A stretch of DNA of 63,955 nucleotides, counting the filler, from Reticulomyxa filosa (Eukaryota > Protista > Foraminifera), in assembly GCA_000512085.1 (NCBI GenBank). It is 16 parts of 16 records of this genome, joined end to end, with 100 filler letters (N's around TTAATTAATTAA, not from the genome) between each part and the next. Parts side by side here need not be neighbours in the genome. Positions count along the whole stretch, not along the records: positions 1 to 12,386 come from ASPP01011787.1; 15 more parts are not named here. One strand, written 5' to 3'. Each line of letters starts with the position of its first letter. Positions within the stretch are counted from its first letter, which is position 1. This document shows, in pieces, positions 1 to 12,386 of this stretch. The notes beneath the pieces are model-generated. The model saw nothing but the letters and a program-made list of their open reading frames with translations. It had not been told where the DNA came from and ran no database searches. The translations under genes and the position numbers were made by a program.

Positions 1-723
1 ACAGTGGTTGTTATGGACGCAACTGGCTCCATGTCTCATTTGCTACAAAAGGCCAAAAACGCAGTTTGCACAATGTTTGAACGAATTGCGACTATTTTAA
101 AGGGACACGGTTTATCTTCCAATAGTTTCGAAATACAATTTGTGGTATATCGAAATTACAATGCACCTGAAGATATACTTTTGCAAGTTTCCCCATGGGA
201 ATCAAAACCTGACAAATTGCGCAGTTTTATGGAAACTGTGAAACCATGTTATGGAATTGATTCTGAAGCTGTTGAAGTCGGGTTAGCCCATGTTAACAGA
301 GAACGTGCAAAAGACGGGGTTTCGCAGGTAATACTGATTGGTGACGCTCCGGCAAATGCCAAAAATGATGTAATTGCTTGGCGACAATCATCTTATCGAG
401 GAACAGAAAGTTCTGGTGCTGAATATTGGAGAAAAACGAAGTTATTCTCCAGCCCGACATATTATGAAGAAGAACTTACAATCTTAAAACAATACAATAT
501 CCCTGTGCACGCTTTTTATGTGGAAAGACAGGCAAAAGAAAATTTTGAAGCAATAGCTCGTATTTCAGGTGGTCGGTGTGCGGAATTAAAGATTAATTCA
601 GATGAAGGATCAGATCAATTAACCAACGTAGTTTCTGAGGAAGTCCTTAGAAATGCTGGTGGATCGAAAGGAAGCGCACTTGTTGATGCTTACCGAGCCA
701 AATTTTCTAAAGCACACGTTTAA
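1..723 (+). CDS. vWA (von Willebrand A) domain; probable C-terminal part of the giant GTPase-SecA protein that runs off the other end of this contig
   Basis: Reads TVVVMDATGSM (DxTxS MIDAS-type), FVVYRNY, EAVEVGL and VILIGDAP, ending at TAA 721-723. It is open from base 1. Bases 1-10 (acagtggttg) equal bases 12377-12386 in the same reading frame. Confidence 0.85.
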   Translation, partial: TVVVMDATGSMSHLLQKAKNAVCTMFERIATILKGHGLSSNSFEIQFVVYRNYNAPEDILLQVSPWESKPDKLRSFMETVKPCYGIDSEAVEVGLAHVNRERAKDGVSQVILIGDAPANAKNDVIAWRQSSYRGTESSGAEYWRKTKLFSSPTYYEEELTILKQYNIPVHAFYVERQAKENFEAIARISGGRCAELKINSDEGSDQLTNVVSEEVLRNAGGSKGSALVDAYRAKFSKAHV

Positions 724-1249
724 CAAAGTACATAAAGTGTAAAGAGTATAAAATTATCAAGCGTTGATGTTGATGATTTATTCAAATTTTCACAATAGAA
801 AACAAAAGCAAGCTATCCCGATAACAACAAAAATACAATTCAGTATTTCTTTTTATACCAGCTGATTCATTTCAAATAATTGTCGCTACAGATGATTTCG
901 TATTTTGCATTTTGATAATCTAACATCAATTTCTCGCTCTTTTACACAAAGTAAAAAGAATTTCAAATACGATAATTTGTAAGCTTCACTCCTTTCTGGA
1001 GCTTTTTCGTCTTTATTTGTTGCATTAATAACACAGAAAACAGTCTGAGATGGAAATAAAAATAATAAACAAAAATTGGATTTGAATTTTAAATGGAAAT
1101 TAGAATTAATCAAAGAGTTTGACAAACGTGTCCGCAAGAAATTCACTGGACAAATATACTGCCTAAAATATAGTAAAATGTATTGTATGTTAAATCTTTT
1201 AAATTGTTAAAAATGTTACAAGGGAAAGAAGTGATTTATTTAGCGTAAA

Positions 1250-1750
1250 TTTTTCACCAGATAGGCGAATGTTGTTTTGTAATTGCTAGACAAGACAGTT
1301 AAAATATAGGACTCATGCCAAGCAAATTCAAAATTTCACTGGTTTATGGATTGGGTGTATATACAAGAGTTTTCACGCAATGCAATAATTTGGCTTCATG
1401 TTCAGCAGATCAAATAATTCGATTGTTGGATGTAAAATTATGAAGAGAAATAACGAAATTTGAAGGATATTATAGGCTAGTATGTCATGAAAATTGCTCC
1501 CTGATGGTAAAATTATTGCATCTTGTTCAGATGATGTACAATTTGTTGGTGTGATGTGAACGCTAGAAAAGGTATATAGAAATCAAAGGTCATCATGCTT
1601 ATATACTAGGAATAGATATAATCAAATGGCAATACTATTGTATCATGTTCAGTTGCATGTCAATGAATAATTCGACATTACAATGATATTTATTAATGCA
1701 AAAAGCACAGACAATAAATCTGTTATTGGTATGATACATCTCTCACTGAC
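1250..1750 (+). pseudogene. Highly degraded WD40-repeat relic
   Basis: Fragments such as ASCSADQIIRLLDV and IASCSDD are interrupted by stops and frameshifts. Boundaries are approximate. Confidence 0.6.
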
Positions 1751-3448
1751 TAGAGCTCCTTTTCTGTTTTAGGAATAGTTGGAGGAGAAACACAAAAACT
1801 GCACAATTATACAATAGTTCATGAATTTGTTGCATGAAGCTGTTGTTGTGCTATCTCTTTGTACATTACAATAATCATCGCAAAATATTCCATGTTGTAC
1901 CGTTGCCTTGTTAATTTGGCAGTCACTACCAATAATCTGAAAGCATATGAAAAAAGTACTTAGTACGTTTTCCCATTTCAAAGAATTTTGGTTGGCCATA
2001 TAATTTTTTTAAGGTAAATCTAATTATATAATTGTTCGTTTAAGTGATATATACTTCATCAAAATTGTCAATTGTGGTACTGTCACCCAAAGGTTCAGCG
2101 TTTAATATTGGAACATGCATATTAAAAAAAATTTGCACAAATTAATGTTTTTCACTGATACAAGAAGTTATTGCTTTGTCAACAACTAAAGTACTTGCGT
2201 TTTCTCTAACGGCGATTTAATCGACACGGAAAAGCATTCACATTTGTTTATCTGCTTTTGAAAAATGAAAGTATGTTAAATTTCGCTTTTAAAATAAGTA
2301 GGAGAATATCTTAAACTGTAGCACATTTTTTTAGCAATATTTTTTATAAGCATAGTTCGCAGATGTTTATTTAGATTATTTTTTTTATGAAGAATCAACT
2401 ATTTCTATAATGTGAAATTTTAGATTTGAACTTTATTTCTTATTTTAACTGTTTTAGAAAAAAACAAAATCAAACTTTAACAATTCTTTCACATTTTTTC
2501 ACAAACACATTTTTAGACATCAAGATGCACAGATATCACTTTAAAAACTTTGAATAATTATTCTTTCATTTTTTTTTTACAAAACAATGCAAACTAATTC
2601 AAGTGTTACACAATTTTCATCAATTCTGCTTGCATTGTTCAAAGGATGTCATTTGAGAATCTGATATTTGAATATGTGTTAATAAAAACATAATCATTTA
2701 TTGTTAATTTAAAACAATTCATTCTGCTCCAAAAAAAAAGTTTTCACAAAATTACTGGATTATTGTTCCTTTATCCCTTTAATTTTCCATTTGTATTTGC
2801 CAGTTGCTTACCATTCTTGTGCATCAATCAAAAACAAGAATGGTTGATTCATTTCTTTTAAACAAAAAAATAGAGTAGATCCAAAAAAAATATATATAAT
2901 TCAAATAAAACACAAAAGGATAAGCATTTTGAAATTCAACCTGACTACACACTTTTGTGTTATGCTGTTTTGACTTGGTTACGGTAAATTTTTCTTGGTT
3001 GGTTGTTTTTTTTTGCTTTAGAGTTTTCTGCACATTTTTAAAAAATTAAACCATTTGTTTTCATCCTCAAATAACGTTTATCGTTAAAAAAAAAGACGTC
3101 TTCAAGATTTTAAACTCACTCGAAATTAAGATATCGTTTATCATGATATAACGACAGAACAATGTGAAAACAAACAAATTTAAGATAAATCCTAGACATT
3201 ATTAAATCACACAACCATTCCTGTCGATATTTGAGAACAGTTCTTCCGAACTAAAAAAAAGGGTATTCCACAACACCAAAGTGTAGTGCTGCTTTTTTTT
3301 TTCTTTTTGTATTGGAGGAATTGACTTTCCATTCTGTACGTTCTTAACCAAACAAAAGCAGAAATGGTTTGTCTTTTTAGTTGCAAAAAAAAAAATGGAG
3401 TGGATCCAAAAAAATTACACCTAACAAAACACAAAGGACAAGCACTTT

Positions 3449-3715
3449 GTGATTGAATCCTATGGAGAAGAAACAGCAATATTTAAGGCAACTGGGTTGC
3501 GCAATGATGGAAGGATGCTAGACAACTCAAAAGAAAGCAACTGGGAAGGGTTGTTGAATACAATCAAAGAGAAGTTCCATCTGACAACCAACTCCTCGTT
3601 TCTTTTAGTAAAAAAAGATAACATTGATGATCATGTCGACAATGATGATGACCTATTTGATCTTTGGAATGTACTTATTAAAGATAAAAAGGCAACATCC
3701 TATACATTAAAAATG
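3449..3715 (+). CDS. 5' exon of giant GTPase-SecA-vWA gene; first PB1/ubiquitin-fold-like module
   Basis: The ORF is followed by a phase-0 GT...AG intron (3716-3790, 75 bp) that joins in frame to RCLEITKEG at 3791. It contains W..L...IKEKF.L ... VDNDDDL..LW. The true start codon is unresolved. Confidence 0.6.
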
Positions 3716-3790
3716 GTGTGTATGACTTCTCTCTTTAAAAAAACAAATAAATAGAAACAATACAGTATTAATAAACAATAAAAAAAATAG

Positions 3791-6400
3791 AGATGTTTGG
3801 AAATAACAAAAGAAGGCAAGAAAATAGAGTGGTGTCCAAAAGGATCGACTGACCCACAGTTTTATGGTGCAATGGAACAGCAAGACTGGACACAAATTTT
3901 TGAAGATCTAAAACGATTAATTGGACTGTCAGACAGTGAATATTTAGAGAATGAAAATCAAAATAATAAAATAGAGACTGCAGATGACTTGAAAAGTATT
4001 TGGGCTGATCGATATGACGAACATGACAGCGATAAATGGTATTTGAGACTTCAAGTCAATCCAAATTCTCTAAAGGAAACTGTAGCGAGTCCAGGAGTTG
4101 AGGGAGGTATAACTGCACAAGCTCATAGGGAAAAAAGTGAAGAGAAGGAGCAAGATAATGAAGATTCCAAGATAGCAGATAGCAACACAGCCAATCTTAA
4201 AAATGACAGCAACAACACAAAAAGAAGTGACAAAAGAGAGGAGAAGAAAGGAGATAAAACATCCGATGAAGACAAATCAAAAAAAATACAACAATCACAA
4301 GAGGTCAACGACGAAGAAGACGAAAAAAAAGAGACAATAAACAAACCAATTCAAAGAAATGAGCATTTTGACATAAAATTGATGTTGGAGTTGGTAAAAA
4401 AGGCAGAAGAGGCAGCAGACGCAATTAAAGATCAAAATGTGGTATTGCTGTTAGGAGGCACTGGAGCTGGAAAATCAACATTAATTCATTTTCTGGCCGG
4501 ATCAACCATGGAGAATCTAATTGTAGATGGGAAGCCCCATATAGCTCCAGTGAAAGTCAAAAATAAAGCATTGGCTAATGTTCGTACAAGTGCAAAAGCA
4601 ACATCCGAGACACGATATATTACGGCTGTTCCCATCAATTTAAAAGGAATGGGTCTGCTTGTGGACATAGATAGTGTTGTTCTTTGTGACACACCTGGAT
4701 TTGAAGACACAAGTGGTCCTGAAGTCGATGTTGCAAATGGCCTTGGAATCATTCGAGCATTACAAAATAGTAAAAGTGTCAAACCTGTGGTGTTGATTTG
4801 TTACACTGCTCTGGGTTATCGAATGAACTGTGTCAAGGAATTGGCCCGTACACTCGTGTCCATTATTCCATCCATCGAAAATCATCTTACTTCATTCTCG
4901 TATGTATTTACCAAACTACCCAAAGAGCAAAAAGAGTATATGCATTCGTTGGTGAAGGATACTTGGATAAGTGTGAAAGACGAGCCAGATGAGGGATTCA
5001 AAGCCATTTTGAAGGACATTGCCAAAAAAACAAAAAATGTTGTGATCGCACCAAATTTAGTGAGTGACTCACCAGATTCTTTGCTGGAGCGTCTTGCCGA
5101 TATAAAGGATTTCATTAAGAATCCTGGAGAGGTCTTTCAACCTTTTGTTTCTGAAAGTTCCAAAGGGGCAGTCCAAATGCAAGTGCAGAAACACAAAGAA
5201 AATATTTGGTTGGCTTATCAAAATGAAGATTATAATGTTGCTAAAACAAAGTTGGATGAACTCACAGACCTAAATAATGTGTTGAAACTTCCAACAATTG
5301 AAAATGAATACAAGGATATTGTGACAAAGTTGACCAATGAATGGAACAAAAAAAGTGAAAATGCCAAATCGATGTTCAACGAACGTATTGCATCTCCACA
5401 TCTAAGCAAAAATGATGTGTTGGCTTATCAGAAAGTCGTAAATGAACTTGTTTCTGCAAAGGGATTACGAAATCATTTGAAAGATGCAATTTGTGGCGAG
5501 TGTTTAATTCAAAATATCAATCAACAAATGCAACATTTGATTAATGCAATTGAAGATCAAAAGGAAGGGGACGAAAGCGCATTACAATCTCATTTGGATA
5601 AAATTTCACAAGTGCAGGCCTGTTTCCCTGATTTTAGTAGTTCTTACAACGAAGCTTGTCAAAAATTGAAAAAAAGAGTCGTAAAGTGTGCGGATGAAGC
5701 AAGAGAATGCATTAAAAAGAATAAATTTATGGAGTTTCGAAAAGAGTTAGAGAAGATTGGAAAGATTTTAATTCTTCAAGAACATCTTCGTTCTCTCATA
5801 GATATCAAGAAAGAGATCAAAGATTTGGAAAATGAATTATTAGTTTATCTCAATAATATTGCAGATGAAGGGCACGCCGTATTGAAAAAAGTAATTAAAG
5901 AAGAGTCTACTCCAACAAAAGGGGAAAAAGAAGGTGAAGGAGAAAAAGTTGAAATAGTTAATGTTCGAATTGAAAAACTCGACAAAACTGCTGTCGATAT
6001 CTTGAAAAGAGCATTTCCTCTCTTGGAGGAAGCAGCAAATGCATTTGACTTGCCTTATGAACATGTTGGACTTGACAAGTCGACAAAAGAGTTGGTTCGT
6101 TCGTTTGTAAATCAAATGATTGGATATTTTGAAAAAGTTAGACAAAAGATTGCATACCTTTTTGAAAAGCAAAGATATCAAGCATTTGATGAAATTAAAA
6201 AATTTATTTTGGTGATGGACGAGCTTCGAACCATAGAAGCCGTAAAACAAAGAACAGGAAGTCAGTATTTTCAAACTATCGAAAAGATATTTGGTTTTGT
6301 GCGTGATGTCCAAAAAGCATTGACACAATACTTAACTCTCTCAATAAGCCAAACGTATCTTTTGATTACAATCGATTGTACGAATGCGTCTTGTGTATAA
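3791..6400 (+). CDS. Giant protein part 2: second PB1-like module, acidic linker, TRAFAC-class P-loop GTPase (AIG1/septin-like), helical region
   Basis: G1 GGTGAGKS (~4454-4477), switch-I SET, G3 DTPG (~4688-4699) and G4-like VFTK are present. An apparent 1-nt frameshift near 6317 continues the frame as ...IDTILNSLNKPNVSFDYNRLYECVLC. Confidence 0.8.
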   Translation, partial: RCLEITKEGKKIEWCPKGSTDPQFYGAMEQQDWTQIFEDLKRLIGLSDSEYLENENQNNKIETADDLKSIWADRYDEHDSDKWYLRLQVNPNSLKETVASPGVEGGITAQAHREKSEEKEQDNEDSKIADSNTANLKNDSNNTKRSDKREEKKGDKTSDEDKSKKIQQSQEVNDEEDEKKETINKPIQRNEHFDIKLMLELVKKAEEAADAIKDQNVVLLLGGTGAGKSTLIHFLAGSTMENLIVDGKPHIAPVKVKNKALANVRTSAKATSETRYITAVPINLKGMGLLVDIDSVVLCDTPGFEDTSGPEVDVANGLGIIRALQNSKSVKPVVLICYTALGYRMNCVKELARTLVSIIPSIENHLTSFSYVFTKLPKEQKEYMHSLVKDTWISVKDEPDEGFKAILKDIAKKTKNVVIAPNLVSDSPDSLLERLADIKDFIKNPGEVFQPFVSESSKGAVQMQVQKHKENIWLAYQNEDYNVAKTKLDELTDLNNVLKLPTIENEYKDIVTKLTNEWNKKSENAKSMFNERIASPHLSKNDVLAYQKVVNELVSAKGLRNHLKDAICGECLIQNINQQMQHLINAIEDQKEGDESALQSHLDKISQVQACFPDFSSSYNEACQKLKKRVVKCADEARECIKKNKFMEFRKELEKIGKILILQEHLRSLIDIKKEIKDLENELLVYLNNIADEGHAVLKKVIKEESTPTKGEKEGEGEKVEIVNVRIEKLDKTAVDILKRAFPLLEEAANAFDLPYEHVGLDKSTKELVRSFVNQMIGYFEKVRQKIAYLFEKQRYQAFDEIKKFILVMDELRTIEAVKQRTGSQYFQTIEKIFGFVRDVQKALTQYLTLSISQTYLLITIDCTNASCV

Positions 6401-6723
6401 ATCAGTCGGAGTGGGTTGACGAACGTCAGGAAGATGGCAACAGCAATTTGAAGGAAACAGTAAAACAAAAGTTGACATTGCATTTACATGAATTACAACA
6501 ATCGAGTCAAGAATTTGAACTCGATTTAGATCATCCTGAACTTCTCAAAGAAGCTCGTAATATCTTCACCCATCTTGGAAATTTGCGTCGTTTGGACGTG
6601 GTCATTCCAGAATTGGCTCCTTTTCGTCAAAAGGTGAGTATCCCATTGGAAAAATCGGTGCGAGCCACATTGGCCACAATTCGTCGTGAATTTGCATTGA
6701 ACACAAAATGTGCCAAATTATGA
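6376..6723 (+). CDS. Giant protein part 3: helical segment between two apparent frameshifts
   Basis: It overlaps both neighbouring long ORFs, with similar composition. The second shift is in an A-run near 6705-6710 (LNTK / NVPNYEK). Confidence 0.65.
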   Translation: MYECVLCINQSEWVDERQEDGNSNLKETVKQKLTLHLHELQQSSQEFELDLDHPELLKEARNIFTHLGNLRRLDVVIPELAPFRQKVSIPLEKSVRATLATIRREFALNTKCAKL

Positions 6724-9700
6724 AAAAATGAGAGAAGAGTTGATCCGGCTCAAACCATGTGCAGAAAGTATTCAAAATGCCAATTCATACCTGCAGAAAG
6801 AGACGTTTAAGAATGTGAAAGACCTTGACTCCAAAATTAATACAATCAAAGAAAAATTAACCAACATTGAGGCTACGTTTAAATCAAAATGTCAACCGAT
6901 TGCAAATAAGATACAAACAGCCGAGGAAAAAATTTCACACTTGGAAAATCTTAAACAAGAGTATGGGAAAATGAATTCCAAGTCACTGTTGGATTCTTTG
7001 TTCTCATCAGATAACAAAGCAATAAAAAATTTGAGTGCACAAGGATATAAATCAATAGAAGCTGTAGAGGAGGATATTCGAAAAGAACAACAAAATTTGG
7101 AAAAGTTATCAGAAGAAGGAGCGAAAATCAAAGAAAGCCTTCAAGAGGAAGTGAAGGAATTAAAAGAAAAGCTGGACAAGGACGAACAAGTAAAGAAGGA
7201 ATATGAAGAACTATTACAAAAGGGAATGGAATCATTGCAAAGCATTACTGAATCATTAAAGAGCCATGGCTTTTTGGAAAGTGATGTGCAAAGATTAATT
7301 AATAATGAAAAAGAATTGAACGATAAAATTCGTCAATGCGAACGGGAACTTGCAAAATTAAAAAAAAATTCTGGATACACTTTTGAAGTGTTGAATGCCG
7401 CCAGAACTGCAAAAGTGTTGCAGTATTTGAAAGAGTGTAAAGCCACTGCCTTCCCTGTTGAAACAACAACAACAACAACAACAAATCAATCTGATAAAAA
7501 TGGCAATGAAAGTAGCAACAATGAGACGAAAGAGGATGAAAAAAAACAAACAGAGAATAGATCAGTAATCCCTCTGAGACAAGAAACCACAAACACATTG
7601 GATTTGGTGGAAGAATTTTTAAGAAAGTATTCCATCTTTGTTCAAAGTCAACTCAATTCTTTAAATTTTATTGAAAGTACAGCAACATTAGAAAATGACA
7701 ATGACAATATGGATATGATTGAGAAAGTTGAGAATATTCTCAACCAATTGACTGAAGTGCAGAAATTGCAAAAAGATTATCCAACGATATTTACACACTT
7801 TCCACAAGATATAATTGAACTATTTAACAAACGATTGAAACAGACTTATTTGAATCTTCACGATGAAATGATGAAATTAGCAGCCGTGGAGACAAGCACG
7901 AAACCGTTAAAAAAAAAAATAGCAGTAGCCAAAATATTGAGTGCATTGGATGATTTTGCCCAACCAAATAACAAATTTCGTGAATTGTTTGTAAAGTATC
8001 AAACGAAAATCTACGATGATGCAATTGACATCGAACCAATACTGGAAGCAATCAGAAAACATGAATATCCTACAATCGTTTCAGAATTGCTTCGCATTCA
8101 ACAAAATATTGACGATCCAAATGTAAAAAGAGCATACGGTAATGTTAGAGCCTCTTTGTCGCGCTTTTTGAACACTTTGGCCAGAACTACTTTGAGAAAA
8201 GTGTTTCTTCTGGGAGAGAATGATGTGGACTTAGATAAAGTGACAGAACTGATGGACAATCTAGAACAGATAAAAGATGCACAACAATTTGTTATCCAAT
8301 TTGTGGATGAAGTGACACAAAAAGAAATTGAAAGAACAGCAGACAAGACCAAATCTGCCATTGGGGGATGGATGGAAGGAGTGTTGGAAACATTTGATGC
8401 ATCCGTGAATGCTTTGAATTTTTTGGAAGCAGAAAAGAAAATTCGATTGGTTCGAAGAGTGGTACACATTTTAGGAGATTATTGTGATCCTGTTCCTTTG
8501 GATAGTTCTGGCAACAACATGACAAGGAAAGTAGAGGACAATGGAAAAGGGGAGACAGGTACAATCATAAGTCGCATCGATAAACTCGAGAAAAAAATTG
8601 AAGCCAAATTGAAAGGTATTTTAAATCGATATAAAAAAATTCAATTAGCTGGAAGCACATTCAATCCCTATTCTTCGTATCCACCCAGAGAAATTTATGC
8701 CAAGCTTGGCAAAGTTATGAGCGGGTGTGCAATGTACGAAGATACGTGGAGAGAAATTGAAGACGACATTATCCAAAAAATTCGAAATCAACTGGAGGAT
8801 GCTCGTGAGAAAGTAGGCACTTTACGTCCATGGGAAATGTTTGCTAGCGTTCGGCTTTGTAAGACAGTATTGAATGTTTTGCCCGACCATATGAAAAGCA
8901 CGCTTGAGGGAGAAATCAAAGAATGCGAACAAGATCTCGTATACGAAATGAATAATGCTGAAGAAACAGTATCAGAAGTGTTGAAGACAAGAGATGTAAA
9001 TGATATTAATCAATTCTTGGATAAATGTACACCCAATCAAAAAAAATTGGTTGAGATCCAAGTGGTTACAATGGCTCGAGGATATGCCACAGGAATGGAT
9101 CAGAAATTGGCTGACGGAAATACGGCTGAGGCATTAGGGAATTTGAAAGAGCTGCTTCATTTAAAAAATTCAATCAAAACAAAACCGATCGAGCTCGAGA
9201 ATCAATTTAAATCGACTAAAAGCAAATTTAACAATCATTTCGAAAAGACACAACAAGAGACAGTGACTGGTTTCGATGCATTGAGTCAGTGTAATTTTGG
9301 AGAAAATACCATCAATTGGATGGAAAAATCATTTGACTTTGTCATTCAATGCATGGACTTGAAGTTAGATTTGAAACAAGAAGCCAGTGAAGTAATGCCA
9401 CTCAATTTCGAAGAAAAAATCAAGGAAATGGATAGAAAGATCTTCTATTCTTTTACATCTTTGCAACAAAAATACAAAACCAATTTTGATCAGAACCATG
9501 CAGTAAATTTACGAAAAGTATTAGACACAGTGCAGACAGTGGGTGATGATAGTCCTTTCCGAAAGAAACTTGAAACGTTTAAACAAAAAATGAAATCTTG
9601 TGATATTCCTGAAGATCCAAGCACGTCCTCCGGTCTATGGACGTATTTAGAAGCGAAAGATACTCTCGATCACCAATTGGAAAATATGGTACAAGAGACA

Positions 9701-12386
9701 ATCAAAGAAGGGATTGTCAATGACACAACCAAGGCAAGCGATACGGAAAGAGATCAATTTTTTCAAAATTTGAAGAAAAAACTTATATTTATGGATCAAA
9801 TGTCTCAATGGAAAGTTCATGTCACAGATGGTAACAAATATCGGCAATATCAAAATCAAGTAGGAAGTGAAATAGATAATATTATTAAAAAAGTAAAAGA
9901 GATTACAAATTGGTCTCGCTCCGATTGTAGTAATCTCAATCATTACTACAAATGTTTCTTGTCCATGCAAAAACATTGCATTTTTCAAATCATTGCAAAA
10001 TCCCAATTTGAAGTTATTGAGTCCATGATAACCGAACGAGTCCAAAAATTGGAAAAAGACGCATCCAAAGGCCCAAATATTTTGGTGTCTTGCTTAATAG
10101 CAATGAAAACAATGTCCGTGCACCTGTTCGATTTTAAGGATACCATCAACAAAAGAATTGATGAATTATTGAGTGGTTACAAAAAAAAAACCAATAGTGG
10201 TATTAGTATTGCAACACTAGCAGCAAAATTAGAAGAAGATCAAAGTGGGATGGGTAAAATGATTATTTTTGAACATAGTGTGTTTAAAGGATACTCGATT
10301 GCGTTGTTCAATCAGAAAACTAAAGCACATGGAATTGACTATGTTTTGGAAAAGATTGAAGTCAAAAATGAAAAAATCGACACATCAAAATTGAAGGACA
10401 TGTATGAGGAATTTCATACAGCATACAATACATTTGTATTCAGCAATTTGGCCAAAGCCAAAGACGACCCAAAGCACCTCAATGTACTTGCGAATAATGC
10501 AAAACTGTGTGCTAACATTTCCAATCAAACACCAGGGGATGAACGCTGGGATGCAAATATTCGAAACAAAATCCCTGGAATAATGGCCAATATTTTTGCA
10601 CTGTGGACACTTCAACACGCACAATACTATCATGATGCAAAAGGCGTAGACGATCAAAAATCTTGTTTGGTACAACCACATCCAGCTCAAGTGATTTCCA
10701 TATTCCGCATGTTGGGTATTGAGGAAAACAAAACTGGATTGACAAATCACTTGATTCAAATTGGAACAGGAGAAGGAAAATCAGTGATTTTAGCGATCAC
10801 TTGTTGTGTTTTAGCATTATTCGGCTTTGATGTGAGCTGTACTTCGTACAGTGAATACTTGAGCAATAGAGATTTCAAAAGCTTTGAGCAATTATTTGAT
10901 ATCTTGGGTGTAATTGATCATATTCATTATGGCACATTCAATATGATTTGTGAAAGGATTATTAATGAAGGAGGTGATATGCGCAGACTAGTTGAAAATT
11001 TAATCCTTCCTGGAAATGATGATGAGAAAAAAGTTGATGATGTTTCTCGAACTGTTCGTTCAAAGATACTTTTAATTGATGAAGTCGATGTATTTTTCAA
11101 CAAAGACTTTTATGGAAGCTGCTATTCACCTGCAGTTACATTGAGACATGATACCATCACCAAACTTATTGATTTCATTTGGAATAATAAAAGGTCATTT
11201 TTGAAATTGAAGGATGTAAAACAATCCAATGAATACAAAGCATGTTGCAATATATTGAGAGGATGGGATTCATTGTTGGATGAAGCGATTAAAGATATGT
11301 TGAGCGCTGTTCAAAACTTTGAGTCTCATGGATATCAAGTGAGCAATGATAAAATTGGATACAAAGAACAAGATGGTATTTCTTACAATATTCGATATGG
11401 TTACAACACTTTATTTGCGTATTATCATGAGAATGCACAAAATAAAATCAGTGATGAAAGTTTAAAAAACAATATATTCCTTTCATTTCAAATTGGAAAT
11501 TTTTCTTATGCCGAGGTTCCCAAAAATTTCTATCGTATTATGGGTGTGAGTGGGACATTGAAAACGTTGAGTGCATCTGAACAAGAAGCAGTGGAGAAGG
11601 AGTATCATGTTTCCAAATATACTTACATGCCATCTTTGTTTGGTAAAAATCAATTAATCTTTGCAGAAAAAGCAGATATTTTTATTGCGGATAAAGACGA
11701 TTATTTCATTATTCTTAAAAAGGAGATTGGTGATCGACTTGTTGGGAAAACGCCAGAAACAAAGCGAGCTGTGTTGGTGTTTTTTGAAACCAAAAAACAA
11801 TTGATGGAATTTTATGAATCGCCACATTTTTCTCCAATTAAAGATGATACAATTGTAATGACTGAAGACAATTCGTTCACAGAGAAAGGATCTCTTATTA
11901 AGCGTGCCACCAGTTCTGGTCAAGTGGGGTTATTCACCAGAGCATTTGGAAGAGGAACAGACTTTATTTGTCGTGATGAAATTGTGGCTTCCAATGGTGG
12001 GCCACATGTGATTCAAACCTTCCTTTCTGAAGAGTTATCTGAGGAAGTGCAAATCAAGGGACGTACAGCCAGACAAGGAGAATCTGGTTCTTACAGTTTG
12101 GTGTTGTGCGACAAGTCACTTGAAAAATTCTCGATTACACAACAAGATATTCAAGATGCGCGTAATGCAGGCAACTTTTATCCAATGTTCAATGCAAAGC
12201 GAAGTGACTTCTTCAAAACTCAATACGCTGAGAACAAAAAATTTGTAGATTATGCTGCAAAAGAGCACAAATTGGGACAGAAACTGATTGCGGCGTTGAA
12301 GAGGAATAATGTAGCTGAGGTGAAGGGAATGTTATGTGAAAAAAACAAAGGAGCTGAAGAGGCTAAATCTTCACGAACAGTGGTTG
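6710..12386 (+). CDS. Giant protein part 4: coiled-coil/helical stalk followed by a SecA-like SF2 ATPase (both RecA lobes); open at the contig end
   Basis: SecA-collinear motifs: QPHPAQ, QIGTGEGKS, SEYLSNRD, IHYGTFN, LIDEVD, GVSGT, AVLVFF, TRAFGRGTDF, GGPHVIQT and QIKGRTARQGESGS (~10670-12110). There is no stop before the spacer. Confidence 0.9.

Follow-up and report, generated by a model that had tools for sequence, protein, structure and literature searches.

The freshwater foraminifer Reticulomyxa filosa (assembly GCA_000512085.1) carries on contig ASPP01011787.1, analysed here over its whole length of 12,386 nt (the window), what appears to be one very large gene that reads from the end of the contig into its start. 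The stretch is identical to the complete GenBank whole-genome shotgun contig, so position 1 is a true contig end, and the concern that it might be an arbitrary cut inside a longer contig does not apply. GenBank annotates two gene models on it, a 236-amino acid vWA piece (13-723) and the partial, 2,840-amino acid RFI_15929 (3515-12379). When the ends are joined, the closed gene comprises positions 3515-3715, an intron, positions 3791-12376 and then positions 1-723, with 9,510 nt of coding sequence (3,169 codons and a stop), a size that falls in the range of 2,900-3,300 amino acids of its full-length relatives. The predicted protein contains, in this order, an acidic N-terminal region, a P-loop GTPase-like domain, a long helical region, a SecA-like two-lobed ATPase and a vWA domain. 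The coordinates of these features are collected in Table 1.

The closure of the gene relies first on the contig termini, which share the 10-nt sequence ACAGTGGTTG. This 10-mer is restricted to the two ends of the contig, two matches to it were obtained in none of 200 dinucleotide-preserving shuffles, and, given the base composition, the two terminal 10-mers would agree with a probability of about 6.5e-7. The initial annotation had described the contig as terminally redundant, and it was right in this. The 1,892-codon open reading frame (ORF) at 6710-12386 has a codon beginning at 12377, from which it reads T-V-V, while the start of the contig in frame 1 reads T-V-V-V-M-D-A-T-G-S-M and continues to a stop at 721-723. 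Since the overlap is in register at both ends, it joins the two frames. Once the duplicated 10 nt are removed, the unit measures 12,376 nt (1 mod 3), so that the closed frame is not endless and terminates normally. A terminal identity was found in none of eight other R. filosa contigs examined and is therefore not an assembly-wide property; a search of the contig for internal and tandem repeats yielded only short families at chance level, nothing of relevance.

Studies on related sequences gave three independent lines of evidence for the end-to-start reading, from paralogous contigs, protein homologues and the short contig L006 (ASPP01041520.1, 727 nt). Eight paralogous junctions, located on seven other R. 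filosa contigs at 70-80% DNA identity, pass uninterrupted from the window end into the window start when the 10 nt are counted once. In a protein alignment with eight uninterrupted homologues, among them full-length proteins from Hydra (3,291 amino acids), Tetrahymena (2,920 amino acids) and a metagenome (3,140 amino acids), the T-V-V of the contig end and that of the contig start share the same three columns, and the full-length homologues display at this place the motif ...N-x-G ... S-R-T/I-x-x-L-M/V-D-A-T-G/S-S-M.... Moreover, a tblastn search with the full-length proteins from Hydra and the metagenome, using the unit after rotation at base 3001 as target, produced in each case one alignment of 2,223 to 2,289 columns, running from window position 6641 or 6704 over the junction to 717. 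Finally, L006 matches the window exactly over approximately 79 nt spanning the junction, with about 80% identity upstream of the exact tract and 96% downstream. It is the exception in this respect: a long exact repeat at the junction was sought also in L001, L003, L004 and L005, where exact matches reached at most 13-17 nt. The comparisons of sequence thus indicate that the end-to-start reading is a real gene structure, as had been proposed from the window alone.

The same data bear on a trivial explanation, namely that the identity arose by chance or that the contig is an assembly chimera without biological adjacency. With very many contigs scanned, a one-in-a-million match of terminal 10-mers is possible somewhere, and the R. 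filosa assembly is highly fragmented (50,809 contigs, N50 of 3.6 kb, approximately 30% repeats; PMC13746701). However, the match is in frame and lies exactly at the homologous helicase/vWA boundary of all relatives, and the independent contig L006 has the same junction sequence, which leaves this explanation scarcely credible.

Table 1. Features of the window and of paralogous R. filosa contigs. Positions without a contig name refer to the window.
Feature	Position	Strand	Remarks
Contig ASPP01011787.1	1-12386		Whole stretch analysed
10-nt terminal identity, 5' copy	1-10	+	ACAGTGGTTG; codons T V V + g
Last 240 codons and TAA stop	1-723	+	vWA domain
vWA strand 1	residues 2-6 of window		
MIDAS-like D-A-T-G-S	16-30	+	Putative metal site (metal ion-dependent adhesion site, MIDAS)
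G-D-A-P in vWA domain	340-351	+	
Spacer between stop of one copy and start of next	724-3514	.	AT-rich (25-32% G+C), no long ORF
Exon 1	3515-3715	+	67 codons from ATG, as in RFI_15929; paralogue L005 aligns across window 3424-4040
Spliceosomal intron, GT..AG	3716-3790	+	75 nt; sequence read against homologue P0001
Acidic N-terminal region, P-loop GTPase-like domain, start of helical region	3791-6316	+	
G1 P-loop GGTGAGKST	4454-4480	+	
DTPGF	4688-4702	+	
First frame change	6312-6316	+	Run of five A; paralogue homology goes on in another frame
Shifted segment, about 130 codons	6317-6704	+	Homologous to family members only in shifted frame
Second frame change	6705-6708	+	Run of four A; back to original frame
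Helical/coiled-coil region (about 1,350 residues), SecA-like two-lobed ATPase, helical linker to junction	6709-12376	+	
ATPase motif GTGEGKS	10763-10783	+	
ATPase motif DEVD	11078-11089	+	
ATPase motif GRGTD	11948-11962	+	
ATPase motif GRTARQG	12059-12079	+	
18 conserved codons	12095-12148	+	Removed as intron in RFI_15929; kept by all paralogues and distant homologues examined
10-nt terminal identity, 3' copy	12377-12386	+	ACAGTGGTTG; in frame of ORF 6710-12386
Paralogous junction	L001 (ASPP01003559.1) 6215-6222		
Truncated family copy	L001 6981-8216		Last approximately 70 helicase-tail codons and vWA; annotated as separate 356-amino acid gene, between two full genes
Paralogous junction	L001 7326-7334		In truncated copy
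Paralogous junction	L003 (ASPP01000196.1) 4791-4799		
Paralogous junction	L005 10654-10661		
Paralogous junction	L006 (ASPP01041520.1) 312-321		
Paralogous junction	L007 4235-4242		
Paralogous junction	L008 3758-3766		
Paralogous junction	L009 (ASPP01025435.1) 5250-5257		

The deposited annotation obscures this structure at several points. In the central part of the gene the frame changes twice at short runs of A, and the two changes cancel, with a net shift of zero; they may be homopolymer base-calling errors or real slippage mutations, the latter making the copy a pseudogene. RFI_15929 steps over both by means of invented introns, in addition to the 18 conserved codons that it removes. By alignment with the relatives, the 236-amino acid model and RFI_15929 are best described as the two ends of one gene of approximately 3,170 residues. 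The initial annotation had warned that a treatment ORF by ORF would split the unit into five unrelated genes; the five ORFs do exist and all belong to one gene, as its exon 1, the three segments delimited by the frame changes and the tail that wraps round, but GenBank contains two models and not five. The GT..AG intron and a G+C content of approximately 34% in the coding parts of the contig (25-32% in 724-3500) fit a nuclear gene.

How the contig came to end and start within the same gene can be approached from the spacer and from the arrangement of the family elsewhere in the genome. In the window the gene tail stands 2.8 kb upstream of the gene start on the same strand, that is, head-to-tail. 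The spacer of the window resembles, at 74-82% identity over 2522-2939 and 3298-3561, the one that separates tandem family genes on L001, where a full gene ending in the vWA domain is followed by a truncated tail copy, the homologous spacer and the next full gene. An inverted match of window 3389-3507 is also present on L001, at 9367-9252. Since L001 thus has a family gene, the homologous spacer and another family gene in succession, a head-to-tail repeat is the best reading of the window. We consider it probable that a direct repeat with a period of 12,376 bp, in head-to-tail orientation and composed of complete or partial copies, lies in a chromosome of the nuclear genome, and that the assembler collapsed it into this contig, one period long. 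Direct observation covers the 10-nt identity, the fact that end and start are exactly colinear with each relative examined, and the tandem organisation with a homologous spacer on L001.

According to this collapsed-repeat explanation, each repeat unit would consist of a gene of approximately 9.6 kb, with its single 75-nt intron, for a protein of approximately 3,170 residues, and of the 2.8-kb spacer. At least two near-identical copies would adjoin, the second being either complete or only partial. The assembler would merge the reads of the copies, and extension from the unique part would enter the shared part from both sides until it met itself, leaving 10 shared bases. Most simply, the repeat could have arisen when unequal crossing-over or segmental duplication acted on this family, which numbers at least 20 loci and bears signs of gene conversion. 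An arrangement in which one full copy is flanked by a partial, near-identical copy (R-U-R) fits equally well, and is comparable to the truncated helicase-tail and vWA copy on L001. The initial annotation had offered a collapsed head-to-tail array or a circle: the tandem family with its homologous spacer on L001 agrees with the former, while the R-U-R layout must be added as a third possibility and nothing favours the circle. Contigs of this topology are an ordinary, expected outcome of assembly and not a new kind of element.

Several observations weigh against the collapsed repeat. A copy number above one would be deduced from topology only, and a search for separately assembled near-identical copies found none at 90% identity or more for the GTPase region and only L006, at 95% identity, as a close one for the vWA tail. 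The length of the overlap, 10 bases, is not tied to any particular assembler. Not all family members are in tandem, since on L007 a TPR gene follows the family gene. In addition, the junction segment is common to the L006 locus, so that the break could be repeat-induced instead of marking the closure of a cycle.

This last point leads to an alternative in which two different head-to-tail family members share only a short helicase/vWA junction segment of approximately 80-130 nt, homogenised by gene conversion, and both contig ends broke there. The tail at 1-723 would then belong to an upstream, diverged copy, and the gene of the window would end in another, unassembled tail. That the L006 locus has the junction segment, though upstream of it this locus shows only about 80% identity to the window, is in line with such an origin, as are the diverged tandem neighbours on L001 and the failure to find a second near-identical copy elsewhere. 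Gene conversion in the family is pointed to by L003, which over window 7578-12250 is 79% identical overall, yet has exact tracts of 236, 140, 130 and 85 nt; the contig begins exactly at its 85-nt tract shared with the window, and these tracts suggest gene conversion between paralogues together with repeat-induced contig breaks. However, the break in the window lies midway in the exact tract and not at its borders, and L006 runs through the segment, implying that reads could span it. The downstream part of L006 differs by 4% from window 1-415, hence it is not a bridging contig, and the vWA-tail search disclosed no contig bearing the other tail or the other upstream part that this scenario requires. 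We therefore judge unlikely both the breakage of two diverged copies at a shared segment and the separate tail that it entails.

An extrachromosomal circle of 12,376 bp with one gene and spacer would predict the same end-to-start closure, and eukaryotes commonly excise circles from their tandem repeats. Against it, no replication or maintenance function was detected: seven stop-free stretches at 1049-1683 gave no family match, the rest of the spacer, which is without long ORF, not having been scanned. To our knowledge, eukaryotic origins are not recognisable from sequence. Moreover, spacer DNA homologous to that of the window recurs within a 22.5-kb linear contig, the gene is interrupted by a spliceosomal intron, its numerous chromosomal paralogues occupy varied contexts (e.g. 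L007, where a TPR gene follows), and the tandem explanation needs nothing new. The circle is in our view highly improbable. Among protists, the circular ribosomal DNA (rDNA) plasmids of Naegleria and Entamoeba are extrachromosomal circles with rRNA genes and origins. The unit resembles them in its order of size (10-25 kb) and in its self-closing assembly topology; unlike them, it carries a protein gene with an intron and has no detected replication feature. The collapsed repeat, for its part, has its counterpart in the collapsed tandem (segmental) gene duplications that are a familiar feature of draft assemblies, with which it shares a contig one period long whose end continues into its start; it differs from the usual case in that the 12.4-kb unit is unusually large and essentially a single giant gene.

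The domains of the predicted protein were analysed with profile, structure and motif searches. The GTPase-like domain scores just under the Pfam thresholds (MMR_HSR1 21.7 versus 21.9, RsgA 24 versus 30), and its PDB sequence matches are restricted to the P-loop. Of the motifs expected in a TRAFAC-type GTPase, G1 and DTPGF (G3) are there, but the canonical NKxD (G4) was not seen. The motor is recognised by Pfam SecA_DEAD (PF07517) with 35.9 bits against a cut-off of 24.6, Helicase_C being weak, and its PDB sequence matches are SecA chains only (E 6e-8). The name SecA given to the ORF at first does not hold, however. The motor is SecA-like and the protein is not SecA, because it is without the preprotein cross-linking domain (no Pfam match to PF01043) and its NCBIfam SecA scores, 27-52 bits, are far under the cut-offs of 725-1085. 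The motor lobes resemble the nucleotide-binding domains NBD1 and NBD2 of the SecA preprotein translocase, but in contrast to SecA the motor sits between a helical region and a vWA domain of a eukaryotic protein of approximately 3,170 amino acids.

The tail domain of the window also remains under the Pfam threshold (VWA_4 16.7 and VWA_2 17.5 bits versus 27), whereas the homologue P0081 passes VWA_4 with 31.1 bits. An AlphaFold2 model built with 51 relatives reached a pLDDT (predicted local distance difference test) of 93.7 and a pTM (predicted template modelling score) of 0.90, and among its top Foldseek matches there are only vWA or I-like domains (E about 1e-7, with a probability of 1.00). 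The model thus predicts an alpha/beta Rossmann-like vWA fold. Residues D6-A-T8-G-S10 and G-D115 show at least 90% conservation among the 51 relatives and would form the putative metal site, in which the second MIDAS position is T and not S. In the model the fold is the same as that of the vWA domains of TFIIH p44/Ssl1, integrin beta (I-like) and CMG2/ANTXR2; sequence identity to these is 11-17%, and the metal-site motif of the window is D-x-T-x-S instead of D-x-S-x-S.

In R. filosa the family has at least 20 loci, and similarity searches retrieved at least 15 further fragments with the vWA tail and likewise at least 15 with the GTPase region. L006 (1-727) is a mosaic with clustered mismatches, an in-frame TAA and a 1-nt insertion soon after the MIDAS motif, and looks like a gene-converted pseudogene fragment as judged by these lesions. 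On L009 (3591-5932), spacer or promoter-like sequence corresponding to window 3253-3475 directly adjoins the helicase region from window 10945 onward, and this copy has an internal gene deletion of approximately 7.5 kb. Within the spacer of the window, at 1380-1660, a 24-nt motif occurs three times at a spacing of 122-125 nt, and its translations recall WD40 repeats (..S-C-S-x-D..I..L.D). This WD40-like periodic remnant obtained no Pfam support; the motif copies may derive from a decayed repeat-protein gene or be due to chance.

Beyond R. filosa, family members are found in bdelloid and monogonont rotifers, Hydra, Tetrahymena, Blepharisma, Arcella and some bacterial metagenome-assembled genomes (MAGs). 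The protein of the window agrees with the 'SecA family profile domain-containing' proteins of approximately 2,900-3,300 amino acids in domain order, in 43-55% identity over the motor and in the conserved helicase-to-vWA junction motif; it differs from them in that its gene has two offsetting frame changes and is split over contig ends. About 50% identity to the foraminiferal motor region is shown by proteins of approximately 3,050 amino acids (e.g. P0033, P0031 and P0036), which have a U-box (PF04564) and one of which comes from a gammaproteobacterial MAG. That the family extends over foraminifera, ciliates, amoebae, rotifers, Hydra and bacteria points to horizontal transfer or to contaminated MAGs. 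A literature search on a giant GTPase/SecA-like/vWA protein family found no specific paper, and the PADLOC defence models matched the protein only weakly, in the P-loop and the coiled coils, and gave nothing specific. With its lineage-specific expansion, pseudogene-like copies, signs of gene conversion and a patchy distribution, the family would show a pattern typical of conflict or immunity genes. A very small probability is granted to the unit existing, at least partly, as an extrachromosomal circular amplicon in this multinucleate foraminifer, carrying a single giant GTPase/SecA-like/vWA gene from a family that diversifies rapidly, is patchily distributed and may have a role in conflict or immunity; if true, the circle would represent gene amplification by circle in a rhizarian.

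For the annotation of the genome, the two GenBank models are to be read as one gene of approximately 3,170 residues, RFI_15929 having invented introns and 18 conserved residues dropped. For its biology, the contig would offer a concrete example of a very large gene amplified in tandem in the highly repetitive, poorly assembled genome of R. filosa. The topology as such will not surprise the specialist. The main value of the finding lies in the correction of the annotation and in the pointer to an uncharacterised family of giant proteins, since the gene draws attention to a large GTPase/SecA-like/vWA family common to foraminifera, ciliates, amoebae, rotifers, Hydra and some bacteria.

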